Notes under the pieces: generated by a model
Told to the model about the DNA's origin: nothing
Databases searched by the model: none
What the model saw: only the letters and a program-made list of their open reading frames with translations
Made by a program: the position numbers and the translations under genes
DNA from: Octopus sinensis
Lineage: Eukaryota
NCBI RefSeq assembly: GCF_006345805.1
Contig: NC_043023.1
Coordinates: forward strand, 16,306,001 to 16,370,000
Length of the DNA: 64,000 nt
Direction: 5' to 3'
Part shown: positions 19,341 through 54,200 of the stretch, piece after piece
Numbering within the stretch: position 1 is the first letter of the stretch
Layout: the number at the start of each line of letters is the position of its first letter

Positions 19341-19391
19341 TATCTAATTCTCTCCCAATTTTACCATTTGTCTGTCGTAGTTCACTGTGGT

Positions 19392-20898: not shown

Positions 20899-21032
20899 TT
20901 ATTTCTTAAAATATTTGCAGCAGAAGAAAGAGTGTCCGACAAGGATTATAGCAAGGCTGAGTATGCCAAGAATGATTCCGACAATCTCGAGTGTTCTGAG
21001 GGGTCTTGATCCATTAGGTTCAGGTTACGGAT
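20899..21032 (-). pseudogene. Gene A terminal exon: (N)P-stop followed by a vestigial stalk/transmembrane/cytoplasmic reading frame
   Basis: Acceptor ttgtcaactgcag|AT CCG TAA CCT GAA.. continues in frame as PEPNGSRPLRTLEIVGIILGILSLAIILVGHSFFCCKYFKK*. AATAAA overlaps the final stop. Confidence 0.75.
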
Positions 21033-23268
21033 CTGCAGTTGACAAACAATAAAATATATACCTTTTGTTTTTAACAAAAAATAGTAATATCTCCCAAGTT
21101 TGACCATTTTCATACTAAACTATTAAAAAATACTTTCGTTTCTGTTATACAAATTCCATTTCAAAGTGATCTAAAGGAAAAGTCCCCATCAAAATTTCCA
21201 GTAACACTATGTTGCACACATAAGCTTGGTTATATAAAGCCTTGTGAGTGGATTTGGTAGACGGATACTGAAGGAAGCCCGTTGTATATATGTATATATA
21301 ATGTATATATATATGTGTGTTTGTGTGTCTGTTTGTCCCCCTAGCATTGCTTGACAACTGATGCTGGGGTGTCTATGTCCCCATCACTTAGCAGTTCAGC
21401 AAGAGAACCGATAGAATAAGTACTAGGCTTACAAAGAATAAATCCTGGGATCGATTTGATCGACAAAAGGCGGTGCTCCAGCATGGCCACAGTCAAATGA
21501 CTGAAACAAGTAAAAAGAGAAAGAGAAAGAGAATATAACCCGCCCCCCCCACACACACCTTGGTATTGACCCCCTCATCCTTTGCCCTTGTGGCAAATAA
21601 AAGAAACCCTTATTATATACAACTATCAGCTGAGTCCATTGTGAAGATGGCCCCTCTACTTTCCCTCAACCAGGAAGGGCAACCAGTTTTTATCTGCTCG
21701 GGGCCCATGGCAAAGGGGATCATACAGTGGACATGTCTGAAAGGGCTGAAGACCAGCAACTGCCATTTTGTCAAAACCCTAATAAACTTTTTCAGGTTTC
21801 ACTTGAAGAGGAAAATCAGGGTGGAGAGGTAAGTACTGGCTTCCAAGCAGTTTGTTGAAAGGTGAGTGAGAGAGGTGAGCATTACCTGAGTGAATGGGCC
21901 TTCTCTTTCAGAGTGTACCTGTATATTGGAGAGGAAAGACTGGGAGAGAGTATCCACCCTGGTGGTCAGGGAGACCTTGGATTTTGTGGGCTTTCTTTAC
22001 GTGTGGCCCTTGAAAGTCCCCCCACTATCAGGGATCTTACTTTGACTTTCTTTTATTCTTTGTATGACTTTTTACATGCTAAAACCCACACTGGACCCTC
22101 CCGAATGTTTTGCTTTGTGTTAGCCCTCTGTGGTTAATAAAGAAATTATTATAAATCATTTCCTTACTCTTTATCTTCAAATCAATTCTTCCAACTTTAA
22201 GGTTGTCGTCTTCAAATCTCCAAGTCAAACATTCCTTAGTTACGTTTTTGATCCAAAGCTTGGAGATACTTGCTATCTGTGTCACTTTATAGTCAGGGCC
22301 ATCAGCGCATGTCCTGTCACATTCATATCTATTATCCTGGCAAATCCAAGCCACCGGTCGTTTCATGTTTGGTACATATATCTCAAGGTTGAGATCTCTA
22401 TAGAGCTCAGCAGTTCCTGAAATAAAGAAATCAAGTTTGCTTCCAAATCATATGGTCCTGGGTTCAGTCCCACTACACAGCACCTTGGGAAAGTGTCTTC
22501 TACTACAGCATCAGCCTTGTGAGTGGATTTTCAAGATGGAAATTGAAAGAAGCCCATTCTATGTATAATTGTGTGTATGTGTGTGTATATATATATATAC
22601 ATACACACTTGTGTCTTTCAAAGCCTTGTGAGTGTATTTGATAGATGGAAACTGAAAGAAGCCCATTGTTTATATATATGTAAATAGAAAATTATTATTT
22701 CTAAGTCTCTGAATGAGAAACATTCAGTAACATTACTCGAGAGTAAAGATTATTTGCCAACATAATATGGCAGTCCTAGTTAGGGTGATTGTTACTGCTA
22801 TTTAGCCCTAGGAAACACTGCCTCCAGCTGCGTATATGACACATTATCTATGTCCTATGGGATGCTAAACTCCCTTGTTTGAAAATATAAGGATGCAGCT
22901 AGTGCGTCATATAGCCAGCTGGAGGCGATGTTTCCTAGGGCTAAGGAACAGTAACAATCGTCCTAACCAGGACTGCAATATTATGTTGGCAAATAATCTC
23001 TACCCTAGAGTACTGTTACTCAATGTCTTTTGTTCAGAGATTTAGAAATAATTTTCTATTTGTTAGATCAGAGACTTTGTGTCACTTTGGAAAGTATATA
23101 TTTTGGACAAGAGTTTAGTGGAGTCATCTCTAGCCGAGCAGTTATTCGGTGCTGATGAAGGGAAATAACCCAGAGACCATTGGTATGCAGATAGTGTGCT
23201 GTATAACCAGCTGGAGATGATGTTTCCTGAGACAACTGCCACATTATGTTGGCAAATAATCTTTACTT

Positions 23269-23776: not shown

Positions 23777-26700
23777 GTATATATATGTATATATATATAT
23801 ATATTAAGTGCAGGGCATCACTGGCAAGTTATAAATATATAAACACACAAGAGATAAGCAAGGGACAAAATAACAAAATACTTAACACCCAGTCATAATA
23901 TTGTAAGAGGCAGCTTCTACCTGGCCGGAATCCATGCTAGGTATCAGTCAGCAAGTAATTTTCTTCATGGAACATGATTAGTTTCTTGCAGACTATTCAT
24001 TCCATGACTTTGCTGAAATGTGAGGTCAGAGAGACAGGCCTATAATTTTTAGCACCTGCCCTGCTTCCTCCTTTATGAATACAGCATATTATTCCTTCTT
24101 TCAGTTTGTCTGGGAGCTTACCAATTAAAAGAAGCTGCAGTGGCATTAGGAAGGGCATCCAGCTGTAGAAACACTGCCAGATCAGAGGGCCCTGGTGCAG
24201 CCTCCTGGCTTCCCAGACCCCGGTCGAACCGTCCAACCCGTGCTAGCATGGAAAGCGGACGTTAAACGATGATGATGATGATGAAATAGCAGTAGAAATG
24301 TTTCATCCATTATTTTCTAAGATAGGGCAGGAAGAAAATGTGCCTAATGATTGGAAAGAGGGATTCATTGTGAAATTGCCAAAAAAAGGAGATTTAAGCT
24401 TTTGCGGAAATTATAAACGGATTATGCTATTATCAGCTCCGGAAAAGATTTTAACAGAATACTTTTAGAGATGATGAGGACAGCAGTTTACAAATTGTTG
24501 TGTAAAGAAGAAGCTGGATTTAGGAAGAGATCAAATCGCCACTCTTTGTATCATCGTAGAGCAAAGCGCAGAGTGGAATGCACCGATTTATTGAATTCGA
24601 AAAAGCATTCGATAGTGTAGATAGGGAAGGCTTATTGAAAATTATGCAGCACTATGGCATACCAGACAAGTACATATCTATAATAAGAGCAACTTACCAA
24701 GGAATGTCATGCCGAGTCTTGCAAGGAAACGGAGCTACGGATAAATTCGATATAAAAACAGGAGTTCGACAGGGCTGTATACTTTCTCCCGTTTTATTTC
24801 TATTAGTCATAGATTGGATTATGAAGGAAACTACGATTGAAAGCCAAACAAGCATTGAATGGACGGATGTGGAAGCTGTAGAAGATCTCGACTTTGCAGA
24901 TGATATAGCGCTACTTTCACAAACGTAACCAAATGCAAAATAAAATGTCAAAATTAGAAGCAATAGCTGCCAAACTAGGATTGAAAGTCAACCTCAAATC
25001 AAAAATTATGCACGTTTATGAAGTAAACATTGAATGTATTCAACTAGAAACTGGTGAACTAGAGGATGTAGCCGAGTTTATGTATTCAGGTAGTAAGATA
25101 ACGTTTTCAGGTGGCACCGACGAAGATATTAAGGTGAGAATAAGTAAGGCAAGGACCGTTTTTCACCTGTTAAAGAAAGTATGGAGCGCAAGTGTAATTT
25201 CAATAAACAACAAAGTAACCTCTCGGAAGAGATGTTCTTCACTCCTGCTCCAGAGCATCGGCTGCGGGGTCACTCCGAAAAGCTCTATCTGTGACGATTT
25301 CATCTCAGTCGAAGGAGAGGGGCCTTCTCTGTCCGGGTTGCGGTTCCGTGGAATAAGCTGCCGGACGAGATAATGAAGATGCCAACGACTGCTCGGTTCA
25401 AAGTCTCCATTGACCACAAATGGCCTGAACTCTTTGCATGAACACCACCCTGTACATAACTCCATGTTCCCCTACATGGCCTTGCTTTTTGCTTTTTGAC
25501 CCCAAAAATTAACTTAACATAACTTAAGTTAAGAATTTTTAACACTAACGTAAAAGCAGTGTTATTGTATGGGGCTGAGACATGGCAAACAACAGTCAAG
25601 TCAAATAAGCAAATACAACTATTCATCAACAGATGCTTGCGTAGTATACTTAAAATTAGATGGCCCAAACACATAAGCAATATGGAGCTATGGCAAAGAG
25701 CAAATCAAGTTTCGATTAGGGAGCAAATATTTAAGAAAAGGAGGAAGTGGATTGGTAGCACAATTAGAAAAGACACACTAAATGTAGTGAAAAGTGCTTT
25801 AAAGTGGAAACCGGTTGGATATAGAAAGAAAGGTAGGCCTAAGAACTCGTGGCATAGATCAACACAAAAGGAACTAGAGAAAGGGGGACATTTATGGCAG
25901 AGTATAAGTACAGAGGCGAAATATTATGCAACATGGAATTCAATTATGAGTGGCCTATACTCCACGTTGGAGGGTCAAAGGTAGGAAAGAAGAATATATT
26001 TACCACTTTGGTAGATCTCATAAATGCTATCACTTGAGAAACCTGTAAAAGATGAAAAAAAAAACTTTGGTTTTTAAGATGAAATATTTCAAAACAATGT
26101 GAATAAATGAACATTATATTTCACAGTAATTTGATTGCTAAATGATTAAAGCAGCAATATCTGTTTTATGTTCTAAGTGGCCGGGTCCAGCCCCTCACAC
26201 CTACCCAACAATGTCAGTCTAAAAATAAACAATCACATCAGCAAAATGTCAAAACTACAAAATAAGGAATGATTAATTCAAAAACCAAGACTAAATGAGC
26301 ATTACATTAAACGGAATAAACTGATTGCTAACGAGTTAAAGTAGCCATACCTGGCACAAAGATTCTACCTGTTTCGTGTTTAAACTGGTAATGGGTCATC
26401 CTTTTACACCTGTCTTACAATGTCATTCTAAAAATGAACAGACAAGGACTGCTATGCAAAGAAGTGCTGATCTCTAACTGTGGAGGCAATCTGTGGAAGA
26501 GGTGGACCCTGGAAGGTGCAGGACAAAACGGTGGAACATGAGGGCTTTGGATGTTGAGGCTGACATGTATTGATAAGTGACTGCGATTTCTGGGGATTTG
26601 CTCTTCTACAGAAGATATGTCAAGCTAATGGAAATCAAGGATGTGGCCAGTGTCGGTAATTAGTAAAAGGCACCTGTGCCAGTGACGTGTAATTTATAAA

Positions 26701-29700
26701 TCTTTCATCAAAACTTTATTGAGAATTTTCAAAATGTGCTCCATCGGCACAATGGAAATTTCAAATGTATCTGTAGACTTGTGAAACACATTTGGAAGTA
26801 TTTGAGGAGTTTATCTTCTGCACTGCTAACTGAATGCATTCTTTAAGTTCAGCTAAAAGATTGCTCCATCTGGGGCATTGTGGTAAAGAAATTAATTGCA
26901 ATCGTATTGAAAAAAGCTGTCATGGACAGATAAGGAATGAAAATAAAATTATAAACAAAATTAAAAATTTAATCACTTAACATATATTAAATATGTGAAG
27001 CAGAGGCAAAAAGTACCTTTAAAAAAAAAGGGTCCATTTTCACTGAAATAGATAATTAATTCTGGGACTGTCTGTATTGAAAACACTTAGCCCCACTCCA
27101 ATGACCCTACACTCTGAAATCTTTACCAAGAACAAAGTCCATGGGGTAAAGAGTGGCTATAAGGGGAATCCAGGTGGGCAGATATGGAGATAATGATGTA
27201 AATAAACAAATAAAACTGAGTGGGTAAGATATACATCCATGCGTACACGTTAATAGAGAGGAAGCAAAGACTGAAAAATTTCAGACGGAGAATATTCAAG
27301 CATCAGAAATCTGAATTAAATATTAACAGAGCAAACTTACACAGACTAGAAAGGCACAGAAAATCAAAGGGAAGAATGTATGGTGTTACAGCTCCTTTCT
27401 TGGCAATCGGGGTTACTTCATCTTTGGTAGATGTACCATCCATACTCACAAATAGGTCTCGCTTTTTTTCACCAAAAATTTAGATAAAAATCAGGGGCAC
27501 AACCTATCCAATAGATATTACAGGGATCTGAAGTGGTGTATCGGTAGTCCATGGCATACCCTGGACCTGGGCTTTTCAGTTTTAAAATTGTTATGGAAAC
27601 TTTTCTGCAATGTTTACTAGAAAGCAGAAACTGGAAGTTTGGTATTTGGTATTTTTTTGACATCCAGTCACCCCAATCTTTAGTTTAAAAATTTTAATAA
27701 TTGCAAACCCTACTTACAAAGTTATAGTAAGAGTTATCAATAGGCACAGAAGTGGCTGTGTGGTAAGTAGCTTGCTTACGAACCACATGGTTCCGGGTTC
27801 AGTCTCACTGTGTGGCATGTTGGGCAAGTGTCTTTTACTATAGCCTCGGGCCGACCAAAGCCTTGTGAGTGGATTTGGTAGACAGAAACTGAAAGAAGCC
27901 CGTCGTATATATGTATATATATATATGTGTGTTTGTGTGTCTGTTTGTCCTCCAAATATCGCTTGACAACTGATGCTGGTGTGTCTACGTCCCTATTACT
28001 TAGCAGTTCGGCAAAAGAGAACCGATAGAATAAGTACTAGGCTTACAAAGAATAAATCCTAGAGTCGATTTGATCGACAAAAGGCGGTGCTCCAGCATGG
28101 CCACAGTCAAATGACTGAAACAAGTAAAAAGAGAAAGAGAATATAACCCCACCCACACACACACCTTGGTATTGACCCCCTCATCCTTTGCCCTTGTGGC
28201 AAATAAAAGAAACCCTTATTATATACAACTATCAGCTGAGTCCATTGTGAAGATGGCCCCTCTACTTTCCCTCAACCAGGAAGGGCAACCAGTTTTTATC
28301 TGCTCGGGCCCCATGGCAAAGGGGATCATACGGTGGACATGTCTGAAAGGGCTGAAGACCAGCAACTGCCATTTTGTCAAAACCCTAATAAACTTTTTCA
28401 GGTTTCACTTGAAGAGCAAAATCAGGGTGGAGAGGTAAGTGCTGGCTTCCAAGCAGTTTGTTGAAAGGTGGGTGAGAGAGGTGAGCATTACCTGAGTGAA
28501 TGGGCCTTCTCTCAGAGTGTACCTGTATATTGGAGAGGAAAGACTGGGAGAGGGCATCCACCCTCGTGGTCAGGGAGACCATGGATTTTGTGGGCTTTCT
28601 TTACGTGTAGCCCTTGAAAGTGCCCCCACTATCAGGGGTTTTACTTTGACTTTCTTTTATTCTTTGTATGACTTTTTACATGCTAAAACCCACGCTGGAC
28701 CCTCCCGAATGTTTTCCTTTGTGTTAGCCCTCTGTGGTTAATAAAGAAATTATTATAAATCATTTCCTTACTCTTTATCTCCAAATTAATTTTTCCAACA
28801 TTAAGGTTGTCATCATCAAATTTCCAAGTTGAACATTCCTTAGTTACTTTTTTGATCCAAAGCGTGGAGGTATTTCCATCCTGTGTCACTTTATAGTCAG
28901 GGCCATCAGGGCATGTCTTGTCACATTCATATTTATAATTGTCGCACTTCCAAACCACCGGTCGTTTCATATCAGGTATTGTTATCGAAAGGGTGAGACA
29001 TCCATTGAGCACAGCAATTCCTGAAATAATGAAATCAGTTAAGAAGTTTGCTTCCAAATCATATGGTCCCGGGTTCAGTCCCACTACACTGCACCTTCGG
29101 AAAGTGTCTTCTACTACAGCCTGTGTGGATTTGCTAGATGGAAACTGAAAGAAGCCCATTGTATGTATCTGTGTGTGTGTGTATGTATATGTGTGTGTGT
29201 ATATATGTATATACATACACACTTGTGTGTTTCAAAGCCTTGTGAGTGTATTTGATAGATGGAAACTGAAAGAAGCCCTTTGTTTATATATATGTATATA
29301 TATATGTAAATAGAAAATTATTATTTCTAAGTCACTGAATGAGAAACATTCAGTAACATTACTCGAGAGTAAGGATTATTTGCCAACATAATATGGCAGT
29401 CCTAGTTAGGATGATTGTTACTGTTATCTAGCCCTAGGAAACACTGCCTCCAGCTGGGTATATGACACATTATCTATGTCCTATGGGATGCTAAACTTCC
29501 TTGTTTGAAAATATAAGGATGCAGCTAGTGTGTCATATAGCCAGCTGGAGACGATGTTTCCTAGGGCTAAGGAACAGTAACAATCGTCCAGACCAGGACT
29601 GCCACATTATGTTGGCAAATAATCTTTACCCTAGAGTACTGTTACTCAATGTCTTTTGTTCAGAGATTTAGAAATAATTTTCTATTTTTTAGATCAGTGA

Positions 29701-32700
29701 CTGTGTGTCACTTTGAAAAGTATATATTTTGGACAAGAGTTTAATGGAGTCATCTCAAGCCGAGCAGTTATTCTGTGCTGATGAAGGGAAATAACACAGA
29801 GACCATTGGTATGCAGATAGTGTGCTGTATAACCAGCTGGAGATGATGTTTCCTGAGACTAAATAACAGTACCATTCGTCCTAACCAGGACTGCCACATT
29901 ATGTTGGCAAATAATCTTTATTTTATATATATATATATATATATATGTATACACACAAAATAAGAAAATGGAGGAATAGATTCCTTTCAATCATCAACTT
30001 CCAGATAATACCAATTCATATAATTTATTAACTAATTATTTAGATTTAATAGGACAGGGCTGTATACTTTCTCCCGTTTTATTTCTATTAGTCATAGATT
30101 GGATCATGAAGGAAACTACGATTGAAAGCCAAACAAGCATTGAATGGACGGATGTGGAAGCTGTAGAAGATCTCGACTTTGCAGATGATATAGCGCTACT
30201 TTCACAAACGTAACCAAATGCAAAATAAAATGTCAAAATTAGAAGCAATAGCTGCCAAACTAGGATTGAAAGTCAACCTCAAATCAAAAATTATGCACGT
30301 TTATGAAGTAAACATTGAATGTATTAAACTAGAAACTGGTGAACTAGAGGATGTAGCCGAGTTTATGTATTCAGGTAGTAAGATAACGTTTTCAGGTGGC
30401 ACCGACGAAGATATTAAGGTGAGAATAAGTAAGGCAAGGACCGTTTTTCACCTGTTAAAGAAAGTATGGAGCGCAAGTGTAATTTCAATAAAGAACAAAA
30501 TAACCTCTCGAAAGAGCTGTTCTTCACTCCTGCTCCAGAGCGTCGGCTGCGGGGTCACTCCGAAAAGCTCTATCTGTGACGATTTCATCTCAATCGAAGG
30601 AGAGGGGCCTTCTCTGTCCGGGTTGCGATTCCGTGGAATAAGCTGCCGGACGAGATAGTGAAGATGCCGACGACCGCTCGATTCAAAGTCTCCCTTGACC
30701 ACAAATGGCCTGAACTCTTTGCATGAACACCACCCTGTACATAACTCCATGTTCCCCTACATGGCCTTTTGCTGTTTGCTTTTTGAGCCCAAAAATTAAC
30801 TTAACTTAAGTTAAGAATTTTTAACACTAACGTAAAAGTGGTGTTATTGTATGGGGCTGAGACATGGCAAACAACAGTCAAGTCAAATAAGCAAATACAA
30901 TCATTCATCAACAGATGCTTGCGTAGTATACTTAAAATTAGATGGCCCCAACACATACGCAATATGGAGCTATGGCAATGAACAAATCAAGTTTTGATTA
31001 GGGAGCAAATATTTAAGAAAAGGAGGAAGTGGATTGGTAGCACAATTAGAAAAGACACACTAAATGTAGTGAAAAGTGCTTTAAAGTGGAAACCGGTTGG
31101 ATATAGAAAGAAAGGTAGGCCTAAGAACTCGTGGCATAGATCAACACAAAAGGAACTAGAGAAAGGAGGACATTCATGGCAGAGTATAAGTACAGAGGCG
31201 AAATATTATGCAACATGGAATTCAATTATGAGTGGCCTATACTCCACGTTGGAGGGTCAAATGTAGGAAACAAGAATATATTTACCACTTTGGGTGATCT
31301 TGTAAATGTTTGCACTTGAGAAACCTGTAAAATATGAAAACAAAAATTTTTGATTTTAAGATGAAATAATTCAAAACAATGTGAATAAATGAACACTATA
31401 TTTCACAGTAATTTGATTGCTAAATGATTAAACCAGCAATATCCGTTTTATGTTCTAAGTGGCCGGGTCCAGCCCCTCACACCTACCCTACAATGTCAGT
31501 CTAAAAATAAACAATCACATCAGCAAAATGTCAAAACTACAAAATAAAGAATGATTAATTCAAAAACCAAGACTAAATGAGCACTACATTAAACGAAATA
31601 AACTGATTGCTAACGAGTTAAAGTAGCCATACCTGGCACAAAGATTCTACCTGTTTCGTGTTTAAACTGGTAATGGGTCAGCCTTTTACACCTGTCTTAC
31701 AATGTCATTCTAAAAATGAACGGACAAGGACTGCTATGTAAAGAAGTGCTGATCTCTAACTGTGGAGGCAATCTGTGGAAGAGGTGGACCCTGGAAGGTG
31801 CAGGACAAAACGGTGGAACATGAGGGCTTTGGATGTTGAGGCTGACATGTATTGATAAGTGACTGCGATTTCTGGGGATTTGCTCTTCTACAGAAGATAT
31901 GTCAAGCTAATGGAAATCAAGGATGTGGCCAGTATCGGTAATTAGTAAAAGGCACCTGTGCCAGTGACGTGTAATTTATAAATCTTTCCTCAAAACTTTA
32001 TTGAGAATTTTCAAAATGTGCTCCATCGGCACAATGGAAATTTCAAATGTATCTGTAGACTTGTGAAACACATTTGGAAGTATTTGAGGAGTTTATCTTC
32101 TGCACTGCTAACTGAATGCATTCTTTAAGTTCAGCTAAAAGATTGCTCCATCTGGGGCATTGTGGTAAAGAAATTAATTGCAATCGTATTGAAAAAAGCT
32201 GTCATGGACAGATAAGGAATGAAAATAAAATTATAAACAAAATTAAAAATTTAATCACTTAACATATATTAAATATGTGAAGCAGAGACAAAAAGGGTCT
32301 TTAAAAAAAAAGGTCCAATTTCACTGAAATAGATAATTAATTCTGGGACAGTCTGTATTGAAAACACTTAGCCCTACTCAAATGACCTTACACTCTGAAA
32401 TCTTTACCAAGAACAAAGTCCATGGGGTAAAGAGTGGCTATAAGGGGAATCCAGGTGGGCAGATATGGAGATAACGATGTAAATAAACAAATAAAACTGA
32501 GTGGGTTAGATATACATCCATGCGTACACGTTAATAGAGAGGAAGCAAAGACTGAAAAATTTCAGATGGAGAATATTCAAGCATCAGATATCTGAATTAA
32601 ATATTAACAGAGCAAACTTACACAGACTAGAAAGGCACAGAAAATCAAAGGGAAGAATGTATGGTGTTACAGCTCCTTTCTTGGGGATTGGGCTTATTTC

Positions 32701-35700
32701 ATTGTTGGTAGATGTACCATCCATACTCACAAATAGGTCTCACTTTTTTTTCACCAAAAATTTAGATAAAAATCAGGGGTACAAACTATCCAATAGATAT
32801 CACAGGGATCTGAAGTGGTGCATCGGAGGTCCATGGCATACCCTGGACCTGGGCTTTTCAGTTTTAAAATTGTTATGGAAACTTTTCTGCAATGTTTACT
32901 AGAAAGCAGAAACTGGAAGTTTGGTATTTGGTATTTTTTTGACATCCAGTCACCCCAATCTTTAGTTTAAAAATTTTGATAATTGCAAACCCTACTTACA
33001 AAGTTATAGTAAGAGTTATCAATAGGCGCAGAAGTGGCTGTGTGGTAAGTAGCTTGCTTACGAACCACATGGTTCCGGGTTCAGTCTCACTGTGTGGCAT
33101 GTTGGGCAAGTGTCTTCTACTATAGCCTTGGGCCGACCAAAGCCTTGTGAGTGGATTTGGTAGACAGAAACTGAAAGAAGCCTGTCGTATATATGAATAT
33201 ATATATGTGTGTTTGTGTGTCTGTTTGTCCTCCAAACATCGCTTGACAACTGATGCTGGTGTGTCTATGTCCCCGTTACTTAGCAGTTCGGCAAAGGAGA
33301 ACTGATAGAATAAGTACTAGGCTTACAAGGAATAAATCCTGGGGTCGATTTGATCGACAAAACGCGGTGCTCCTGCATGGCCACAGTCAAATGACTGAAA
33401 CAAGTAAAAAGAGAAAAAGAATATAACCCCCACACACACACACCTTGGTATTGACCCCCTCATCCTTTGCCCTTGTGGCAAATAAAAGAAACCCTTATTA
33501 TATACAACTATCAGCTGAGTCCATTGTGAAGATGGCCCCTCTACTTTCCTTCAACCAGGAAGGGCAACCAGTTTTTATCTGCTCGGGCCCCATGGCAAAG
33601 GGGATCATACGGTGGACATGTCTGAAAGGGCTGAAGACCAGCAATTGCCATTTTGTCAAAACCCTAATAAACTTTTTCAGGTTTCACTTGAAGAGGAAAA
33701 TCAGGGTGGAGAGGTAAGTGCTGGCTTCCAAGCAGTTTGTTGAAAGGTGGGTGAGAGAGGTGAGCATTACCTGAGTGAATGGGCCTTCTCTCAGAGTGTA
33801 CCTGTATATTGGAGAGGAAAGACCGGGAGAGGGCATCCACCCTGGTGGTCAGGGAGACCTTGGATTTACTGGGCTTTCGTAACGCGTAGCCCTTGAAAGT
33901 GCCCCCACTATCAGGGGTTTTACTTTGACTTTCTTTTATTCTTTGTATGACTTTTTACATGCTAAAACCCACGCTGGACCCTCCCGAATGTTTTCCTTTG
34001 TGTTAGCCCTCTGTGGTTAATAAAGAAATTATTATAAATCATTTCTTACTCTTTATCTTCAAATCAATGTCTGCAGCATTAAGGTTGTCATCATCAAATT
34101 TCCAAGTCGAACATTCCTTAGTTACTTTTTTGATCCAAAGCGTGGAGGTATTTCCATCCTGTGTCACTTTATAGTCAGGGCCATCAGCGCATGTCCTGTC
34201 ACATTCATATTTATAATTGTCGCACTTCCAAACCACCGGTCGTTTCATATTAGGTATTGTTATCGAAAGGGTGAGACATCCATTGAGCACAGCAATTCCT
34301 GAAATAATGAAATCAGTTAAGAAGTTTGCTTCCAAATCATATGGTCCCGGGTTCAGTCCCACTACACTGCACCTTCGGAAAGTGTCTTCTACTACAGCCT
34401 GTGTGGATTTGCTAGATGGAAACTGAAAGAAGCCCATTGTATGTATCTGTGTGTGTGTGTATGTATATGTGTGTGTGTATATATGTATATACATACACAC
34501 TTGTGTGTTTCAAAGCCTTGTGAGTGTATTTGATAGATGGAAACTGAAAGAAGCCCTTTGTTTATATATATGTATATATATATGTAAATAGAAAATTATT
34601 ATTTCTAAGTCACTGAATGAGAAACATTCAGTAACATTACTCGAGAGTAAGGATTATTTGCCAACATAATATGGCAGTCCTAGTTAGGATGATTGTTACT
34701 GTTATCTAGCCCTAGGAAACACTGCCTCCAGCTGGGTATATGACACATTATCTATGTCCTATGGGATGCTAAACTTCCTTGTTTGAAAATATAAGGATGC
34801 AGCTAGTGTGTCATATAGCCAGCTGGAGACGATGTTTCCTAGGGCTAAGGAACAGTAACAATCGTCCAGACCAGGACTGCCACATTATGTTGGCAAATAA
34901 TCTTTACCCTAGAGTACTGTTACTCAATGTCTTTTGTTCAGAGATTTAGAAATAATTTTCTATTTTTTAGATCAGTGACTGTGTGTCACTTTGAAAAGTA
35001 TATATTTTGGACAAGAGTTTAGTGGAGTCATCTCTAGCCGAGCAGTTATTCTGTGCTGATGAAGGGAAATAACACAGAGACCATTGGTATGCAGATAGTG
35101 TGCTGTATAACCAGCTGGAGATGATGTTTCCTGAGACTAAATAACAGTACCATTCGTCCTAACCAGGACTGCCACATTATGTTGGCAAATAATCTTTATT
35201 TTATATATATATATATATATATATATGTATACACACAAAATAAGAAAATGGAGGAATAGATTCCTTTCAATCATCAACTTCCAGATAATACCAATTCATA
35301 TAATTTATTAACTAATTATTTAGATTTAATAGGACAGGGCTGTATACTTTCTCCCGTTTTATTTCTATTAGTCATAGATTGGATCATGAAGGAAACTACG
35401 ATTGAAAGCCAAACAAGCATTGAATGGACGGATGTGGAAGCTGTAGAAGATCTCGACTTTGCAGATGATATAGCGCTACTTTCACAAACGTAACCAAATG
35501 CAAAATAAAATGTCAAAATTAGAAGCAATAGCTGCCAAACTAGGATTGAAAGTCAACCTCAAATCAAAAATTATGCACGTTAATGAAGTAAACATTGAAT
35601 GTATTAAACTAGAAACTGGTGAACTAGAGGATGTAGCCAAGTTTATGTATTCAGGTAGTAAGATAACGTTTTCAGGTGTCACCGACGAAGATATTAAGGT

Positions 35701-38366
35701 GAGAATAAGTAAGGCAAGGACCGTTTTTCACCTGTTAAAGAAGGTATGGAGCGCAAGTGTAATTTCAATAAAGAACAAAATAACCTCTCGAAAGAGCTGT
35801 TCTTCACTCCTGCTCCAGAGCGTTGGCTGCGGGGTCACTCCGAAAAGCTCTATCTGTGACGATTTCATCTCAATCGAAGGAGAGGGGCCTTCTCTGTCCG
35901 GGTTGCGGTTCCGTGGAATAAGCTGCCGGACGAGATAGTGAAGATGCCGACGACCGCTCGATTCAAAGTCTCCCTTGACCACAAATGGCCTGAACTCTTT
36001 GCATGAACACCACCCTGTACATAACTCCATGTTCCCCTACATGGCCTTTTGCTGTTTGCTTTTTGAGCCCAAAAATTAACTTAACTTAAGTTAAGAATTT
36101 TTAACACTAACGTAAAAGTGGTGTTATTGTATGGGGCTGAGACATGGCAAACAACAGTCAAGTCAAATAAGCAAATACAATCATTCATCAACAGATGCTT
36201 GCGTAGTATACTTAAAATTAGATGGCCCCAACACATACGCAATATGGAGCTATGGCAATGAACAAATCAAGTTTTGATTAGGGAGCAAATATTTAAGAAA
36301 AGGAGGAAGTGGATTGGTAGCACAATTAGAAAAGACACACTAAATGTAGTGAAAAGTGCTTTAAAGTGGAAACCGGTTGGATATAGAAAGAAAGGTAGGC
36401 CTAAGAACTCGTGGCATAGATCAACACAAAAGGAACTAGAGAAAGGAGGACATTCATGGCAGAGTATAAGTACAGAGGCGAAATATTATGCAACATGGAA
36501 TTCAATTATGAGTGGCCTATACTCCACGTTGGAGGGTCAAATGTAGGAAACAAGAATATATTTACCACTTTGGGTGATCTTGTAAATGTTTGCACTTGAG
36601 AAACCTGTAAAAGATGAAAACAAAAATTTTTGATTTTAAGATGAAATATTTCAAAATAATGTGAATAAATGAACACTATATTTCACAGTAATTTGATTGC
36701 TAAATGATTAAACCAGCAATATCCGTTTTATGTTCGAAATAGCCGGGTCCAGCCCCTCACACCTACCCTACAATGTCAGTCTAAAAATAAACAATCACAT
36801 CAGCAAAATGTCAAAACTACAAAATAAAGAATGATTAATTCAAAAACCAAGACTAAATGAGCACTACATTAAACGAAATAAACTGATTGCTAACGAGTTA
36901 AAGTAGCCATACCTGGCACAAAGATTCTACCTGTTTCGTGTTTAAACTGGTAATGGGTCAGCCTTTTACACCTGTCTTACAATGTCATTCTAAAAATGAA
37001 CGGACAAGGACTGCTATGTAAAGAAGTGCTGATCTCTAACTGTGGAGGCAATCTGTGGAAGAGGTGGACCCTGGAAGGTGCAGGACAAAACGGTGGAACA
37101 TGAGGGCTTTGGATGTTGAGGCTGACATGTATTGATAAGTGACTGTGATTTCTGGGGATTTGCTCTTCTTCAGAAGATATGTCAAGCTAATGGAAATCAA
37201 GGATGTGGCCAGTATCGGTAATTAGTAAAAGGCACCTGTGCCAGTGACGTGTAATTTATAAATCTTTCCTCAAAACTTTATTGAGAATTTTCAAAATGTG
37301 CTCCATCGGCACAATGGAAATTTCAAATGTATCTGTAGACTTGTGAAACACATTTGGAAGTATTTGAGGAGTTTATCTTCTGCACTGCTAACTGAATGCA
37401 TTCTTTAAGTTCAGCTAAAAGATTGCTCCATCTGGGGCATTGTGGTAAAGAAATTAATTGCAATCGTATTGAAAATAGCTGTCATGGACAGATAAGGAAT
37501 GAAAATAAAATTATAAACAAAATTAAAAATTTAATCACTTAACATATATTAAATATGTGAAGCAGAGACAAAAAGGGTCTTTAAAAAAAAGGTCCAATTT
37601 CACTGAAATAGATAATTAATTCTGGGACAGTCTGTATTGAAAACACTTAGCCCTACTCAAATGACCTTACACTCTGAAATCTTTACCAAGAACAAAGTCC
37701 ATGGGGTAAAGAGTGGCTATAAGGGGAATCCAGGTGGGCAGATATGGAGATAACGATGTAAATAAACAAATAAAACTGAGTGGGTTAGATATACATCCAT
37801 GCGTACACGTTAATAGAGAGGAAGCAAAGACTGAAAAATTTCAGACGGAGAATATTCAAGCATCAGAAATCTGAATTAAATATTAACAGAGCAAACTTAC
37901 ACAGACTAGAAAGGTACAGAAAATCAAAGGGGAGAATGTATGGTGTTACAGCTCCTTTTTTGGGGATTGGGCTTACTTCATCGTTGGTAGATGTACCATC
38001 CATACTCACAAATAGGTCTCACTTTTTTTTCACCAAAAATTTAGATAAAAATCAAGGGTACAACATATCCAATAGATATCACAGGGATCTGAAGTGGTGT
38101 ATCGGTAGTCCATGGCATACCCTGGACCTGGGCTTTTCAGTTTTAAAATTGTTATGGAAACTTTTCTGCAATGTTTACTAGAAAGCAGAAACTAGAAGTT
38201 TGGTATTTGGTATTTTTTTGACATCCAGTCACCCCAATCTTTAGTTTAAAAATTTTAATAATTGCAAACCCTACTTACAAGTTATGGAAAGAAATTAAAT
38301 AAAATATAAATAAAACTTACAGACAAATGTTACAAACAGTAAGCAGAACAAGATCCATTTAGCCAT
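21025..38366 (-). CDS. Gene A (predicted, spliced): leader + three tandem [39-nt + 249-nt Ig-like] cassettes + terminal exon; 305 aa if all cassettes are joined, 113 aa with one
   Basis: Exons 38321-38366, 36566-36604, 34050-34298, 31286-31324, 28772-29020, 26004-26042, 22168-22416 and 21025-21032. All introns are GT-AG, phase 1, with strong pyrimidine tracts. Splicing yields MAKWILFCLLFVTFVCFSSA|NIYKITQSGIAVLNG... with no internal stop. No transcript evidence available. Confidence 0.8.
22168..22416 (-). CDS. Gene A Ig-like exon, cassette 1 (most divergent)
   Basis: tttcag|GA..AAG A|gtaagg, 249 nt: GTAELYRDLNLEIYVPNMKRPVAWICQDNRYECDRTCADGPDYKVTQIASISKLWIKNVTKECLTWRFEDDNLKVGRIDLKIK. Confidence 0.82.
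22682..23270. mobile_element. Intronic ~380-bp imperfect palindrome plus extra arm with a degenerate CTGATGAAGGG..CCC motif (Penelope/MITE-like)
   Basis: 22682-23061 is self-complementary. Copies at 29308-29920 and 34586-35200; absent from gene B. Confidence 0.7.
23433..23526 (-). ncRNA. Type I hammerhead ribozyme motif (sense to gene A pre-mRNA)
   Basis: Minus strand: AATTGG-CTGATGA-GTGCT(long stem II)AGTAC-GAAA-CGATCG-TA-CCAAATT. Palindromic stem III ACGATCGT, cleavage triplet GUA. Confidence 0.65.
23591..23684 (+). ncRNA. Type I hammerhead ribozyme motif (inverted partner)
   Basis: CTGATGAG at 23599, CGAAAC at 23664. Stem II GTACT/AGTAC is extended by CATC/GATG, TTAAAT/ATTTAA and TGTAA/TTACA. 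GUA at 23674-23676. Confidence 0.65.
23880..24120 (-). mobile_element. CR1-group LINE reverse transcriptase fragment
   Basis: KLKEGIICCIHKGGSRAGAKNYRPVSLTSHFSKVME followed by a degenerate HGFRPGRSC. Confidence 0.8.
24290..25990 (+). mobile_element. Decayed RTE-clade LINE (RT to 3' end) with nested CR1 3' fragment (~25220-25530)
   Basis: EFEKAFDSVDR, GVRQGCILSPVLF, DFADDIALL, VLLYGAETW, RKKGRPKNSW. The insert reads LRGHSEKLYL..RRRGAFSVRV..WNKLP..FKVSLDHKW with a TAACT-type tail. Confidence 0.9.
26004..26042 (-). CDS. Gene A 39-nt exon, cassette 1 (xFSSDSIYEIYQSG)
   Basis: Acceptor catcttttacag, donor G|gtaaat, phase 1-1. Confidence 0.78.
27745..28135 (+). mobile_element. Full-length tRNA-derived SINE at the cassette junction (copy at 33025-33415)
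   Basis: Head, body and (GAGAAA)n tail. It marks the join between intron-1-derived and intron-3-derived sequence. Confidence 0.85.
28772..29020 (-). CDS. Gene A Ig-like exon, cassette 2
   Basis: 249 nt, phase 1-1: GIAVLNGCLTLSITIPDMKRPVVWKCDNYKYECDKTCPDGPDYKVTQDGNTSTLWIKKVTKECSTWKFDDDNLNVGKINLEIK. Confidence 0.85.
30050..31270 (+). mobile_element. Copy of the decayed RTE + nested CR1 fragment (5'-deleted)
   Basis: Same lesions as 24290-25990. Joined at its 5' end to a MITE arm fragment. Confidence 0.9.
31286..31324 (-). CDS. Gene A 39-nt exon, cassette 2 (xFSSANIYKITQSG)
   Basis: cttttacag|GT..G|gtaaat. Confidence 0.8.
34050..34298 (-). CDS. Gene A Ig-like exon, cassette 3
   Basis: 249 nt, phase 1-1: GIAVLNGCLTLSITIPNMKRPVVWKCDNYKYECDRTCADGPDYKVTQDGNTSTLWIKKVTKECSTWKFDDDNLNAADIDLKIK; donor A|gtaaga. 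Confidence 0.85.
35330..36550 (+). mobile_element. Third copy of the decayed RTE + nested CR1 fragment
   Basis: Near-identical to 30050-31270 at a 5280-bp offset. Confidence 0.9.
36566..36604 (-). CDS. Gene A 39-nt exon, cassette 3 (completes the signal peptide: CFSSA|NIYKITQSG)
   Basis: cttttacag|GT..G|gtaaat. Confidence 0.82.
38321..38366 (-). CDS. Gene A leader exon (signal peptide MAKWILFCLLFVTFV)
   Basis: ttttttcag|ATC ATG GCT AAA TGG..GTC T|gtaagt. The acceptor 3 nt upstream of the ATG implies a further non-coding 5' exon that I did not locate. Confidence 0.82.
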
Positions 38367-38679
38367 GATCTGAAAAAATAATTTTGAAAAGCTGCAAAAT
38401 AACAAAGTTTATAGCCCAGGGTCCGAGGCTGGTCAGGCTGAGAAAAACAAACAGTCACAATATCATCAGTCACTCTTTAATAGATTTATGGTCGAGCCTG
38501 TGGCATTGGAGATCTTATTCTTAACTATTTCGAATACTACAGAACGCTGTACAGTAGAGACAAGTGCAGTTTGAACTTGCACAAACACTTTTTGCTACAG
38601 CATTTTCACGTCAAAATAAACGTTTTCTGAAGAAAATTCTAAATCATTTGAAACTTCTAACTGTGAACATTCTTCTTAC

Positions 38680-39073
38680 TCTTTACTCTTTTACTTGTTT
38701 CAGTCATTTGACTGCGGCCATGCTGGAGCACCGCCTTTAGTCGAGCGAATCGACCCCGGGACTTATTCTTTGTAAACCCAGTACTTATTCTATCGGTCTC
38801 TTTTGCTGAACTGCTAAGTGATGGGGACGTAAACATACCAGCATCGGTTGTGAAGCAATGCTAGGGGGACAAACACAGACACACACATACATATATATAT
38901 ATACATATATATGAAAGGCTTCTTTCAGTTTCCGTCTACCAAATCCACTCACAAGGCATTGGTCGGCCCGGGGCTATAGCAGAAGACACTTGCCCAAGAT
39001 GCCATGCAGTGGGACTGAACCCGGAACCATGTGGTTGGTAAGCAAGCTACTTACCACACAGCCACTCCTGCAC
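38680..39073 (-). mobile_element. Full-length tRNA-derived SINE
   Basis: Same family as 3792-4466. Confidence 0.85.
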
Positions 39074-51217: not shown

Positions 51218-54200
51218 CTGTAATTGACAAACAATAAAATATATACCTTTTGTTTTTAATAAAAAAGCTTGACCATTTTCATACTAAACTATTAAAAAAT
51301 ACTTTCGTTTCTGTTATACAAATTCCATTTCAAAGTGATCTAAAGGAAAAGTCCCCATCAAAATTTCCAGTAACACTATGTTGCACACATGAGCTTGGTT
51401 ATATAAAGCCTTGTGAGTGGATTTGGTAGACGGATACTGAAAGAAGCCCGTCTTATATATGTGTGTGTTTGTGTGTCTGTTTGTCCCCCTAGCATTGCTT
51501 GACAACTGATGCTGGGGTGTCTATGTCCCCGTCACTTAGCAGTTCAGCAAGAGAACCGATAGAATAAGTACTAGGCTTACAAAGAATAAATCCTGGGGTC
51601 GATTTGCTTGACTTAAGGCGGTGCTCCAGCATGGCCACAGTCAAATGACTGAAACAAGTAAAAAGAGAAAGAGAAAGAGAATATAACCCCCCCCCCACAC
51701 ACCTTGGTATTGACCCCCTCATCCTTTGCCCTTGTGGCAAATAAAAGAAACCCTTATTATATACAACTATCAGCTGAGTCCATTGTGAAGATGGCCCCTC
51801 TACTTTCCCTCAACCAGGAAGGGCAACCAGTTTTTATCTGCTCGGGGCCCATGGCAAAGGGGATCATACAGTGGACATGTCTGAAAGGGCTGAAGACCAG
51901 CAACTGCCATTTTGTCAAAACCCTAATAAACTTTTTCAAGTTTCACTTGAAGAGGAAAATCAGGGTGGAGAGGTAAGTGCTGGCTACCAAGCAGTTTGTT
52001 GAAAGGTGGGTGAGAGAGGTGAGCAATACCTGAGTGAATGGGCCTTCTCTTAGAGTGTACCTGTATATTGGAGAGGAAAGACTGGGAGAGGGCATCAACC
52101 CTGGTGGTCAGGGAGACCTTGGATTTTGTGGGCTTTCTTTACGTGTGGCCCTTGAAAGTCCCCCCACTATCAGGGATGTTACTTTGACTTTCTTTTATTC
52201 TTTGTATGACTTTTTACATGCTAAAACCCACACTGGACCCTCCCGAATGTTTTTCCTTTGTGTTAGCCCTCTGTGGTTAATAAAGAAATTATTATAAATC
52301 ATTTCCTTACTCTTTATCTTCAAATTAATTCTTCCAATATTAAGGTTGTCATCTTCGAATTTCCAAGTCGAACATTTCTTAGTTACTTTTTTGATCCAAA
52401 GCGTGGAGGTATCTCCTAAATGAGTCACTTTATAGTCATGGCCATCAGCGCATGTCCTGTCACATTCATATTTATAATTGTGGCACTTCCAAACCACCGG
52501 TCGTTTCATGTTCGGTATTGTTATCGAAAGGGTGAGGTTTCCATTGAGCACAGCAGGTCCTGAAATAAAGAAATCAGTTAAGAAGTTTGCTTCCAAATCA
52601 TACGGTCCTGGGTTCAGTCCCACTACACAGCACCTTGGGAAAGTGTCTTCTACTACAGCATCAACCTTGTGAGTGGATTTTCTAGATGGAAATTGAAAGA
52701 AGCCCATTGTATGTATATGTGTGTGTGTGTATGTGTGAGTGTGTGCGTGTGTATGTATGACTGGCAGTGTGAAGCGGCTGACCTCCCTTGTTCGAAGGTT
52801 ATAATGGACAGTTTGTGTGTCAAATAGCTAGCTTGAGGCGATGGCCTCATGGAGCTAATCAGCGACAGCTTTTAGTCTTATATCTATAAGACTGCCATAT
52901 TAATATGGCGATAACAATTAATTTCCAGTAACGCTGCCGTAATCTCTTTTAGAGAGACTTAGTAATTTTAATATTTCTATTATATATATATATATATAAG
53001 ACCAACTTACCAAGGAATGTCATGCCGAGTCTTGCATGGAAACGGAGCTACAGATAAATTTGAAGTAAAAACAGGAGTTCGACAGGGCTGTATCCTTACT
53101 CCCTTTTTATTTCTATTAGTCATAGATTGGATTATGAAGAAAACTACGATTGAAAGCCAAACAAGCATTGAATGGACGGATGTGGAAGCTGTAGAAGATC
53201 TCGACTTTGCAGATGATATAGCGCTGCTTTCACAAACATAGCCAAATGCAAAATAAAATGTCAAAATTAGAAGCAATAGCTGCCAAACTAGGATTGAAAG
53301 TCAACCTCAAATCAATAATTATGCACGTTAATGAAGTAAACATTGAATGTATTAAACTAGAAACTGGTGAACAAGAGGATGTAGCCAAGTTTATGTATTC
53401 AGGTAGTAAGATAACGTTTTCAGGTGGCACCGACGAAGATATTAAGGTGAGAATAAGTAAGGCAAGGACCGTTTTTCACCTGTTAAAGAAAGTATGGAGC
53501 GCAAGTGTAATTTCAATAAACAACAAAATAACCTCTCGAAAGAGCTGTTCTTCACTCCTGCTCCAGGGTCACTCCGAAAAGCTCTATCTGCGACGATTTC
53601 ATCTCAATCGAAGGAGAGGGGCCTTCTCTGTCTGGGTTGCGGATCCGTGGAATAAGCTGCCGATGACCGCTCGGTTCAAAGTCTCCCTTGATCACAAATG
53701 GCCTGAACTCTTTGCATGAACACCACCTTGTACATAACTCCATGTACCCCTACATGGCCTGGCTTTCTGCTTTTTGAGCCAAAAAATTAACTTAAGATTT
53801 TTTAACACTAACGTAAAAGCGGTGTTATTGTATGGGGCTGAGACATGGCGAACAACAGTTAAATCAAATAAGCAAATACAATCATTCATCAACAGATGCT
53901 TGCGTAGTATACTTAAAATTAGATGGCCCCAACACATAAGCAATATGGAGCTATGGCAAAGAACAAATCAAGTTTCGATTAGGGAGCAAATATTTAAGAA
54001 AAAGTGGAAGTGGATTGGTAGCACAATTAGAAAAGACACACCAAATGTAGTGAAAAGTGCTTTAAAGTGGAAACCGGTTGGATATAGAAAGAGAGGTAGG
54101 CCTAAGAACTCGTGGCGGAGATCAACACAAAAGGAACTGGAAAAAGGGGGACATTCATGGCAGAGTATAAGTACAGAAGTGAAAAATTATGCAACATGGA

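Follow-up and report, generated by a model that had tools for sequence, protein, structure and literature searches.

In the MHC, introns that lie beside diverse exons are said to look younger than these exons or to have been homogenised, as Cereb, Hughes & Yang in 1997 and Bergstrom et al. in 1998 reportedly described, and the title of one MHC study (PMC3720538) presents exon 2 as shaped by selection, recombination and gene conversion. Accelerated exons have reportedly been found by Nakashima et al. in 1993 and 1995, Conticello et al. in 2001 and Metz et al. in 1998, in snake-venom PLA2, conotoxins and abalone lysin. The FREPs of Biomphalaria are a molluscan IgSF-fibrinogen defence family, the diversity of which is attributed to gene conversion together with point mutation (PMC12074976), and the cassettes of Dscam are mutually exclusive, one being included per cluster (PMC12074976).

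The window analysed here, a stretch of 64,000 nucleotides from Octopus sinensis, contains LOC115225115, one gene of an uncharacterised cluster. The family to which this gene belongs is undescribed and octopus-only, and its members are small Ig-domain proteins of the membrane, with one to four domains. As in the vertebrate MHC class I/II peptide-binding exons and the KIR/LILR-type Ig receptor clusters, the exon for the putative recognition domain of this family is more diverse than its introns, and, as in the MHC, old variation is common to copies and species and is re-assorted in short conversion tracts. However, there is no homology with the MHC beyond the Ig-like fold, and the octopus variation described here is one among tandem paralogues and modules. 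The family is like the FREPs in being a molluscan Ig-superfamily multigene family arranged in tandem clusters, but its proteins are membrane-anchored, lack a fibrinogen domain and carry a distinct domain that stays below the Pfam I-set threshold. With arthropod Dscam1-type genes it shares tandemly duplicated Ig-segment exons in one transcription unit, every combination of which is in frame, and many predicted isoforms, whereas its modules are serial in the NCBI models, have a linker microexon each, and number three copies rather than dozens. Recent paralogues differ more in the exon than in the introns, without an excess at third codon positions, as in the accelerated-exon families; however, the excess in those families is attributed to new replacement substitutions, while that in the octopus family consists mostly of shared, re-assorted variants. 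By analogy, the diversification of this family would resemble that of the MHC or FREP type.

The exons from which a gene of this family is built are a leader, a microexon of 39 nt, an Ig-like exon of 249 nt and a transmembrane exon. In LOC115225115 the microexon and the Ig exon have been triplicated in tandem with a 5.28-kb unit, and these copies are what the first-pass annotation of this DNA called cassettes. Self-BLAST and a three-way comparison place the tandem repeat, 2.56 units in length, at 24768..38292, where 24768-33014 matches 30053-38292 with 97.9% identity over 8252 bp; the unit contains an intron-1-like segment, the microexon, intron 2, the Ig exon and a portion of 3' intron of about 1 kb. 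The array ends 28 bp downstream of the donor site of the leader exon, the signal-peptide coding exon (MAKWILFCLLFVTFV) at 38321..38366 on the minus strand, which is the first coding exon in the XP model P0044, has a TATA-like motif and an acceptor site upstream of it, and singly serves the modules c3, c2 and c1. All module exons are likewise on the minus strand. The 39-nt microexons of c3 (36566..36604) and c2 (31286..31324, FSSANIYKITQSG) are identical, and that of c1 (26004..26042, FSSDSIYEIYQSG) differs from both at 7/39 positions, versus 2.6% in the intron around it (Fisher p=8e-5). Translation and splice sites delimit the Ig-like exons c3 (cassette 3, 34050..34298) and c2 (cassette 2, 28772..29020), and comparison with c4, c2 and c3 identifies a hyperdivergent Ig-like exon c1 at 22168..22416. 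A homologue of the transmembrane-type terminal exon at 20899..21032 (minus strand) has an in-frame stop at codon 3 (NP*, AAA to TAA) and is left out by the NCBI models; if spliced, it would lead to a secreted product. As an outgroup we used the neighbouring single-module gene copy, with its Ig-like exon c4 at 52311..52559 (minus strand), a leader exon at 56276-56321, a microexon at 54267-54305 and a stop-containing TM-like exon at about 51084-51217. A single long-read assembly underlies all of our results, and L002, a divergent unplaced copy of the neighbouring gene, shows clear indel errors or haplotigs.

At least 16 isoforms are predicted for LOC115225115, among which X8, X11, X12 and X16 have c3, c2 and c1 in series, and X9 leaves out c2. 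Tandem duplicated exons for the same segment, here three modules, all of phase 1-1, are present in one transcription unit as in genes of the Dscam type, but the NCBI predicted models inspected do not show one cassette per mRNA, as the modules are mostly serial in them. Hence the term cassette is apt in so far as it denotes tandem modules, but these are modelled as serial domains behind one leader and not as mutually exclusive alternatives.

For the c3 exon, AlphaFold2 with a 31-sequence alignment returned a seven-stranded model (pLDDT 96.2, pTM 0.85), the best PDB matches of which in Foldseek were titin I-set domains, Ig1 of NCAM2 and antibody VL domains (TM 0.6-0.72). The product of the Ig exon is thus predicted to have an Ig-like beta-sandwich fold, similar to that of titin or NCAM. 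A search of the single exon against Pfam gave no match, and the scores of the four-domain P0004 (23.6 bits, against a cut-off of 23.7) and of P0007 (21.7) with the I-set model are both sub-threshold. W23 and C32 are invariant, C36 is nearly so, and C25 and C62 are other recurring cysteines; since the B strand (residues 8-13) is without a conserved cysteine, the cysteine pattern is non-canonical.

Exons c2 and c3 both have canonical AG/GT splice sites, open frames and phase 1-1 boundaries, and are 100% identical to residues 234-315 and 138-219 of XP_036369928.1, respectively. They differ at exactly 10 positions (4.0%), 9 of them replacement and 1 silent, in full agreement with the earlier manual count. 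These differences are located at exon nt 48, 103, 111, 191, 223, 226, 228, 230, 234 and 240, or window positions 28973, 28918, 28910, 28830, 28798, 28795, 28793, 28791, 28787 and 28781, and result in eight amino-acid differences in the 82-residue translation: the c2 exon (28772) has D16, K34, P37 and VGKINLE at residues 74-80, where the c3 exon (34050) has N16, R34, A37 and AADIDLK. The residue changes listed previously are the same ones, numbered +1 relative to this translation. Six of the ten differences are found inside 18 bp (clustering permutation p=0.0007).

The upstream intron next to c2 (29021-30052) and that next to c3 (34299-35332) are almost identical, as had been estimated by eye, with 2 substitutions (29744 and 29757) in 1032 bp and a 2-bp length difference at a TA microsatellite. 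The contrast between the exon and this intron is not due to chance, since it has a Fisher p of 3e-6. However, the near-identity is by no means limited to the roughly 0.9 kb noted earlier. Pairwise alignment and change-point analysis reveal a near-identical tract of 3.59 kb at 28974..32566, with its upper copy in the c3 module at 34252..37845, in which 17 substitutions are found in 3545 bp (0.48%); the lower copy reaches no further than nt 47 into exon c2 and includes, besides intron 2 and the microexon, the greater part of the intron-1-like segment. Accordingly, the divergence is about 2.8% in 24768-28973, 0.48% in 28974-32566, and 17/448 in 32567-33014. The maximum-likelihood change point is located after 28973, 47 nt into the exon (LR 48; 2-logL support interval 28830-29049), which bears out the suggestion of a conversion or recombination boundary near the exon, and a second one is located after 32566 (LR 32); both boundaries are sharp. 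The downstream flank is indeed more diverged, as had been claimed: the 3' intron flank of c2 (27733..28771, minus strand) differs from the c3 copy (33015-34049) at 29/1035 positions, five of which are clustered in 18 bp of non-coding sequence (28589-28606), where the c3 state is common to the O. vulgaris units V1a and V1b. The exon (4.0%) does not differ significantly in divergence from its own 3' intron (2.8%, p=0.31), nor from the remainder of the older block (111/3994, p=0.24). Exon versus intron is therefore the wrong contrast; rather, the near-identical tract ends inside the exon or at its 5' edge.

The differences between c2 and c3 are for the most part not unique to them. In 7- and 10-unit alignments, the latter sampling 10 units from five loci, both states are found in other units for 8/10 exon differences, including the AADIDLK/VGKINLE block, and for about 13/17 of the 3'-intron differences, with donors named for some patches only; the eight exon differences recur in other O. 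sinensis and O. vulgaris copies. Within the exon, the copy-unique differences are limited to nt 111 (P37) and nt 191, which is silent. The c3 exon has zero private bases and c3 has no private changes in its flanks either, and c2 has 2 in the exon and 2 in 581 flank columns, a density similar to the 0.5% of the near-identical tract. The unit L2a reads like c2 at nt 48 and 103 but like c3 at nt 111, 191 and 223-240 (identical GCTGCAGACATTGATTTGAAG), a combination that violates the four-gamete test, and its flank is nearest to c4, its exon to c3. The AAD motif of the G strand also occurs in O. vulgaris P0006, P0053 and both L004 modules, as well as in O. sinensis P0009, and is thus older than the c2/c3 split. 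In the three-way comparison, the near-identical tract groups copies B and C versus A (62 BC|A sites versus 15 others), and over the initial 450 bp of intron 1 all three are equally distant from one another (AB|C 8, AC|B 9, BC|A 8). An independent replicate of the pattern is seen between O. sinensis L002 and O. vulgaris L003, which differ at 3 positions over the 3.6 kb from intron 1 through the microexon to intron 2, versus 26/249 in the Ig exon and 18/200 directly downstream. The evidence for recombination comprises change-point likelihood, the clustering permutation and the four-gamete pattern. As 8/10 differences are shared and c3 is without a unique base, c2 and c3 form a mosaic, probably made by ectopic gene conversion or unequal recombination, gene conversion being the dominant process at this pair.

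We thus consider it about 60% probable that c2 and c3 are a mosaic of older family variants that were re-assorted after a 5.28-kb tandem module duplication. Within a single gene of an octopus-specific cluster, this duplication would have generated the modules of microexon and Ig exon, and a 3.6-kb stretch, which takes in the greater part of intron 1 along with the microexon and intron 2 but no more than 47 nt of the exon, would still reflect very recent common ancestry at about 0.5% divergence. The clustered differences in the remainder of the exon, its 3' intron and the initial 450 bp of intron 1 would then not be new mutations but existing family variants, brought into new combinations by unequal recombination or by ectopic gene conversion between paralogues. 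For the AADIDLK block, one likely partner is module 1 of LOC115225116, the gene next door. An export of variants from c3 to L2a could also have taken place. The first-pass annotation had proposed that conversion homogenised the introns while the exon escaped; it was right about gene conversion, but the reverse direction, in which patches were imported into the exon and its 3' flank, fits at least equally well, and we lean slightly, in a direction that we infer, towards such an import after a recent duplication of the whole module. Since no c2/c3 orthologue was found in O. vulgaris, the age of the duplication is not fixed.

The best surviving alternative, which we nevertheless regard as doubtful, is an old triplication at about 3% divergence ago, followed by a single 3.6-kb conversion that homogenised modules 3 and 2 from intron 1 through the microexon to intron 2 and halted at the exon by chance or through selection against erasing exon differences. 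Outside the tract all pairs of modules are separated by similar distances, 2.5-3.8% over the 3' flanks and the initial 450 bp of intron 1 (for the 3' flanks, c2-c3 2.8%, c1-c2 2.5% and c1-c3 3.5%), which is more simply explained by this history. Moreover, one event would account for the tract, and the recurrence of the exon-anchored boundary in L002/L003 is expected if exon identity is selected against. However, if mutation had driven the exon and 3' flank apart by about 3%, each copy should have roughly 12 private changes in the 830 columns scored, versus 0 seen in c3 and 4 in c2, and since most differences are common to paralogues outside the triplication and to O. vulgaris, extra conversion events are needed anyway.

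We consider it very improbable that uncollapsed haplotypes, a miscounted repeat or homogenisation by short-read polishing has given rise to the pattern, which would then represent allelic variation or polishing. Tandem repeats of 5 kb at 97-99.5% identity are difficult to assemble, a 1-nt deletion in L002 is not seen in the chromosomal gene model, and no protein similar to c2 or c3 is annotated in O. vulgaris. However, the window is without gaps, the two copies have sharp boundaries that correspond in position, mis-polishing would not halt at an exon edge, and the same pattern is found between independent assemblies of two species (L002/L003). In addition, four NCBI models, which depend on the assembly, place c3 and c2 in one transcript, and as the near-identical tract retains 17 differences, the two copies were resolved separately.

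For the c2/c3 pair, dN is 0.047 and dS 0.020 (dN/dS 2.35), and dN is not significantly greater than dS (Fisher p=0.36); with 79.6% replacement sites, the 9:1 ratio is consistent with neutrality (p=0.36). In most pairs dN/dS is not significantly above 1. Across the family, the divergence of the Ig exon exceeds that of the flanks in 44/45 pairs, an excess carried mainly by variants that are shared: parsimony-informative sites amount to 45/249 in the exon versus 46/581 in the flanks (p=5e-5), and exon diversity at the three codon positions is 0.144, 0.126 and 0.088 (27/27/20 variable sites), versus 0.02-0.08 in nearby flanks. The c2/c3 differences are mostly replacements because this standing exon variation is itself replacement-rich, which suggests, as far as a role of selection can be inferred, family-level diversifying selection on old, shared variants. 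Exon c1 alone looks like a burst of private replacement changes. It differs by 15.7-17.3% from c4, c2 and c3 where its flanks differ by 2-4%, and its private changes number 14 (13 of them replacement, one silent), versus 6 in the flank (5.6% versus 1.0%; p=2e-4); between c1 and L1, dN exceeds dS with an uncorrected p of 0.007, and recombination confounds selection tests in this family. Rapid positive selection on new exon point mutations after a very recent duplication, the other explanation put forward originally, is the least credible of all, because despite the dN/dS of 2.35, the family-wide excess of exon divergence, the private changes of c1, and the placement of changes in loops and at alternate, probably solvent-facing positions of the predicted G strand (judging from the strand pattern), the 9:1 ratio does not depart significantly from neutrality, the exon is not significantly more diverged than its 3' intron, 8/10 differences pre-exist in paralogues, only 2/10 are unique to either copy with one of them silent, and an equally tight cluster lies in the non-coding flank.

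A high replacement:silent ratio beside an identical intron can thus mimic positive selection; here it stems from re-assorted older variants and a recombination boundary. While the c2/c3 pair is ordinary, the variable Ig exon of the family is less so: a variable exon, cross-species variants, a recurrent exon-anchored boundary and in-frame modules would, by analogy, be typical of self/non-self recognition. To our knowledge, no diversified immune or recognition receptors are known in cephalopods, and the family is therefore a concrete candidate for a recognition system. It is a speculative and rather unlikely proposal that LOC115225109, LOC115225115, LOC115225116 and their relatives constitute a cephalopod-specific hypervariable recognition-receptor system, an independent counterpart of Dscam-hv, FREPs and the MHC that combines germline exon-anchored conversion with RNA-level diversity. 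In such a system, germline Ig-domain diversity would arise from exon-anchored gene conversion among tandem modules, and further diversity may come from the combinatorial inclusion of phase 1-1 modules across neighbouring transcription units and from the choice of transmembrane versus stop-containing (secreted) terminal exons.

The window is eukaryotic DNA (~38% GC) with abundant microsatellites and transposable elements. The three Ig-like exons c1, c2 and c3 are all contained, at 100% identity, in XP_036369928.1, isoform X8 of the O. sinensis gene LOC115225115, which places the window on O. sinensis chromosome CM016885.1. As seen at the related locus L001, genes of this family have four kinds of coding exons, namely, a leader exon, a 39-nt microexon coding for the last part of the signal peptide or for a linker, a 249-nt domain exon and a transmembrane (TM)/tail exon, and all internal exons are in phase 1-1. 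Leader exons were located by a short-word search, which found a single one (38321-38366, minus strand) ahead of the three modules. We rejected a placement based on homology to intron 1 of the L001 gene, as the match proved to be a 254-bp satellite without positional homology; this tandem repeat is present both in that intron and in the window (40099-40834 and 56790-57507). Each module comprises a microexon and an Ig exon on the minus strand, at 36566-36604 and 34050-34298 for c3, 31286-31324 and 28772-29020 for c2, and 26004-26042 and 22168-22416 for c1. Their source is a tandem repeat with a 5.28-kb unit (24768-38292, 2.56 units), which ends 28 bp past the donor site of the leader exon. A second gene copy with a single module, whose Ig-like exon is c4, occupies 56321-51084 on the minus strand.

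A TM-type exon with a stop as its third codon follows c1 (~20899-21032, minus strand). The L001-type terminal exon (GAQGTSSLRTKSIL...) was not found in the window by fuzzy peptide search, nhmmer, phmmer or a scan for acceptor sites and hydrophobicity, and this different, stop-bearing exon stands in its place. The TM-type exons at 20899-21032 and 51084-51217 (minus strand) have the identical in-frame stop at codon 3 (NP*, AAA to TAA), and the latter contains an additional stop within the TM segment; their O. vulgaris homologue (89086-89217 of locus L003) has an intact DPKPE start and the second stop in common. The NCBI models bypass these exons and splice to a TM exon beyond the window; if the stop-bearing exons were spliced, secreted products lacking the TM segment would result.

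Both c2 and c3 are 249-nt minus-strand exons with canonical acceptor (TTTCAG/GA) and donor (AAAGA/GTAAG) sites and an open frame in phase 1-1. The first-pass annotation had described their differences as mostly non-synonymous and the adjoining intron as nearly identical, and both descriptions were borne out: the exons differ at exactly 10 positions, nine replacement and one silent, giving eight amino-acid differences, and the intron (29021-30052 vs 34299-35332) differs by two substitutions and by 2 bp in the length of a microsatellite. The contrast between exon and upstream intron is not due to chance (10/249 vs 2/1032, Fisher p=3e-6). Self-alignment of the repeat at an offset of one unit divides it into a block that is ~2.8% diverged (24768-28973), a block with 17 substitutions in 3545 bp (0.48%; 28974-32566) and a block with 17 in 448 bp (32567-33014). 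The first change point falls after 28973, 47 nt into the exon (support interval 28830-29049), and the second after 32566; therefore, the near-identical intron lies within a 3.6-kb tract that stops at the 5' edge of the exon. A change point within the exon supports the conversion boundary that had been proposed near it. On the other hand, the positive selection proposed at the same time finds no support, since the divergence of the exon (4.0%) does not exceed that of its own 3' intron (29/1035, p=0.31) and the nine to one ratio is the neutral expectation for an exon with 79.6% replacement sites (p=0.36). Nor does it exceed that of the entire older block (p=0.24), and the dN/dS of 2.35 is non-significant. 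The c2/c3 pair by itself gives no evidence for selection.

We traced the source of these differences in an alignment of ten units: c1 to c4, one unit of L001, two of L002 (an unplaced scaffold, copy or haplotig of the neighbouring gene LOC115225116) and three from O. vulgaris L003. At eight of the ten differing exon positions, both states are found in other units. The L002 unit L2a agrees with c2 at nt 48 and 103 (D16, K34) and with c3 at nt 111, at nt 191 and over the entire 3' end, where GCTGCAGACATTGATTTGAAG, encoding AADIDLK, is identical, and this combination violates the four-gamete test. The AAD variant of the G strand also occurs in several O. vulgaris genes (P0006, P0053 and the two L004 modules) and in P0009 of O. 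sinensis, which indicates that it is old. The differences are clustered as well, six of the ten lying inside 18 bp (p=0.0007). The non-coding flank holds a cluster that is just as tight (28589-28606, five differences in 18 bp), and both O. vulgaris V1 modules share its c3 state. Counting as private those bases at sites where all other units agree, c3 has none in the exon and none in 581 flank columns, and c2 has two in the exon (P37 and the silent change) and two in the 581 columns; this density of ~0.5% equals the divergence of the 3.6-kb tract. These counts of private and shared changes are alignment-based, replacing an alignment-free k-mer sorting that was confounded where differences cluster. 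A search for c2/c3 orthologues in O. vulgaris returned other paralogues only, in L003 (V1, V2) and L004.

A second, independent instance comes from the collinear loci L002 of O. sinensis (10101-14300) and L003 of O. vulgaris (15490-19700). Over the 3.6 kb that span intron 1, the microexon and intron 2, up to the acceptor site of the Ig exon, they differ at three positions; the exon differs at 26/249 positions and the sequence directly downstream at 18/200, so that divergence is ~8-10% over the exon and the next 300 bp, and differences are only patchy farther on. Thus, the exon-anchored boundary recurs, at the same position as in c2/c3, in a different gene and between two assemblies. The second Ig exon of L002 (17530-17777; VCDQ01005272.1) is frameshifted by a 1-nt deletion, and the chromosomal model LOC115225116 has an intact version of this domain, which suggests either that the scaffold is a haplotig carrying an assembly indel or that this copy is pseudogenised.

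Across the family, exon divergence exceeds flank divergence in 44 of the 45 unit pairs (ratio 1.2-7.1). Variable exon sites number 27/27/20 by codon position, with diversities of 0.144, 0.126 and 0.088 at positions 1, 2 and 3, compared with 0.02-0.08 in well-aligned nearby flanks; we relied on pairwise local alignments and gap-free near-flank columns, as ten-unit flank diversity is inflated by misaligned ends bearing transposable elements. The excess sits in shared, parsimony-informative sites (45/249 vs 46/581 in flanks, p=5e-5), not in private changes. The exception is c1, whose exon has 14 private changes, 13 of them replacements, against six in 581 flank columns (p=2e-4) and differs from c4 at 39/249 positions with flanks at ~2%; its microexon is likewise enriched in differences (7/39 vs 2.6%, p=8e-5). 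Either a genuine burst of replacements or import from an unsampled donor may account for this hyperdivergence. Pairwise dN/dS ranges from 0.65 to 2.8 in a second set of pairs, and c1 vs L1 (4.99) is the sole significant pair (p=0.007, uncorrected).

The best reading of these results is that c2 and c3 are mosaics, built up as tandem modules exchanged sequence through ectopic gene conversion or unequal recombination: the exon differences would be re-assorted family variants that existed beforehand, and the 3.6-kb tract would mark the latest shared ancestry. The process could have run in either of two directions. The whole module may have been duplicated recently, with patches then imported into the exon and 3' flank, as favoured by the private-change counts and the L002/L003 replicate; or the triplication may be older, the introns having been homogenised later by a 3.6-kb conversion, as favoured by the three modules being nearly equidistant outside the tract. 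A single unequal crossover fits neither scenario, as the middle module should then match one neighbour exactly to either side of the crossover point, a pattern that is absent. Positive selection on new mutations in the pair is disfavoured. Although haplotig-like copies and indel errors do occur in the assembly (L002), an assembly artefact is unlikely, given that the window is gap-free, the tract holds 17 differences between sharp boundaries and the pattern recurs across assemblies.

Several repeats accompany the modules. A 147-bp satellite forms arrays at 2950-3533, 16976-18153, 47211-48093 and 62432-63166 and has grown to ~9 kb in O. vulgaris (L003 38188-47371), and a 140-bp tandem repeat lies at 18665-19323 and 48605-49263. 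Strong G-over-C skew (~+0.41 to +0.43) at 14001-16000 and 44001-46000 occupies matching positions in the copies of a large segmental duplication (12685-22586 vs 42948-52736). Intron 2 contains a foldback element with 179-nt arms (29304-29482 and 29516-29694, 80% complementary, spaced by 33 nt) and a third partial arm (29815-29920), the equivalent in the c3 intron lying at ~34582-34972; it may be a MITE-like insertion. A ~400-bp dispersed SINE/TE-like repeat (82-93% identity) occurs in both orientations at 4075-4471, 7153-7549, 13390-13805, 27737-28145, 33019-33425, 38679-39097 and 43639-44049, and may have had a role in the duplication, since one copy adjoins the junction of the 5.28-kb units (33014/33019).

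An initial homologue search with a single exon as query returned three O. sinensis proteins only, at no more than 75% identity, and missed LOC115225115, whose protein was recovered only by an exhaustive search of representatives. The latter gave 31 representative relatives, and all those with source looked up are from octopus (O. sinensis, O. vulgaris and O. bimaculoides). Other members have one to four domains per protein, some only ~40% identical to each other, so module duplication is an old and recurrent route to longer proteins. The domain is predicted to be a seven-stranded Ig-like sandwich (pLDDT 96.2), with titin I-set domains, NCAM2 Ig1 and antibody VL domains as nearest structural neighbours; a Pfam search with a single Ig exon gave zero matches, and the I-set score of the four-domain protein P0004 is slightly under threshold. 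Among the NCBI predicted isoforms examined, X8, X11, X12 and X16 have c3, c2 and c1 in series, X9 leaves out c2, and one isoform of the neighbouring gene begins at the window leader exon and omits all three; the predictions depict tandem domains with some exon skipping rather than mutually exclusive alternatives. RefSeq models (P0004, P0035-P0037, P0041 and P0044) join exons of at least three adjacent units (LOC115225109, LOC115225115 and LOC115225116) into 16 or more isoforms, reflecting either true read-through and combinatorial splicing or chimeric models built across a repetitive cluster. P0014, a complete 138-residue single-domain member, is encoded on a 1067-bp Logan contig assembled from a sequencing run; the contig is probably a spliced transcript because the genomic introns of the family exceed 2 kb, and would thus be indirect evidence for expression. 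We found no paper naming these gene identifiers.

The locus belongs to none of the MHC, KIR, FREP or Dscam families. Compared with them, the octopus domain is Ig-like by fold only, with a non-canonical cysteine pattern; unlike FREPs, the proteins are without a fibrinogen domain, and unlike in Dscam, the predicted models do not use the cassettes in a mutually exclusive manner. The comparison takes FREP and Dscam mechanisms from PMC12074976 and extends to MHC introns and to venom or lysin exons. In its workings, the pattern resembles diversification of the MHC, KIR or FREP type: the Ig exon is hypervariable, its variants are old and shared, conversion tracts are short and the introns are younger. 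The family behind the c2/c3 pair merits follow-up.
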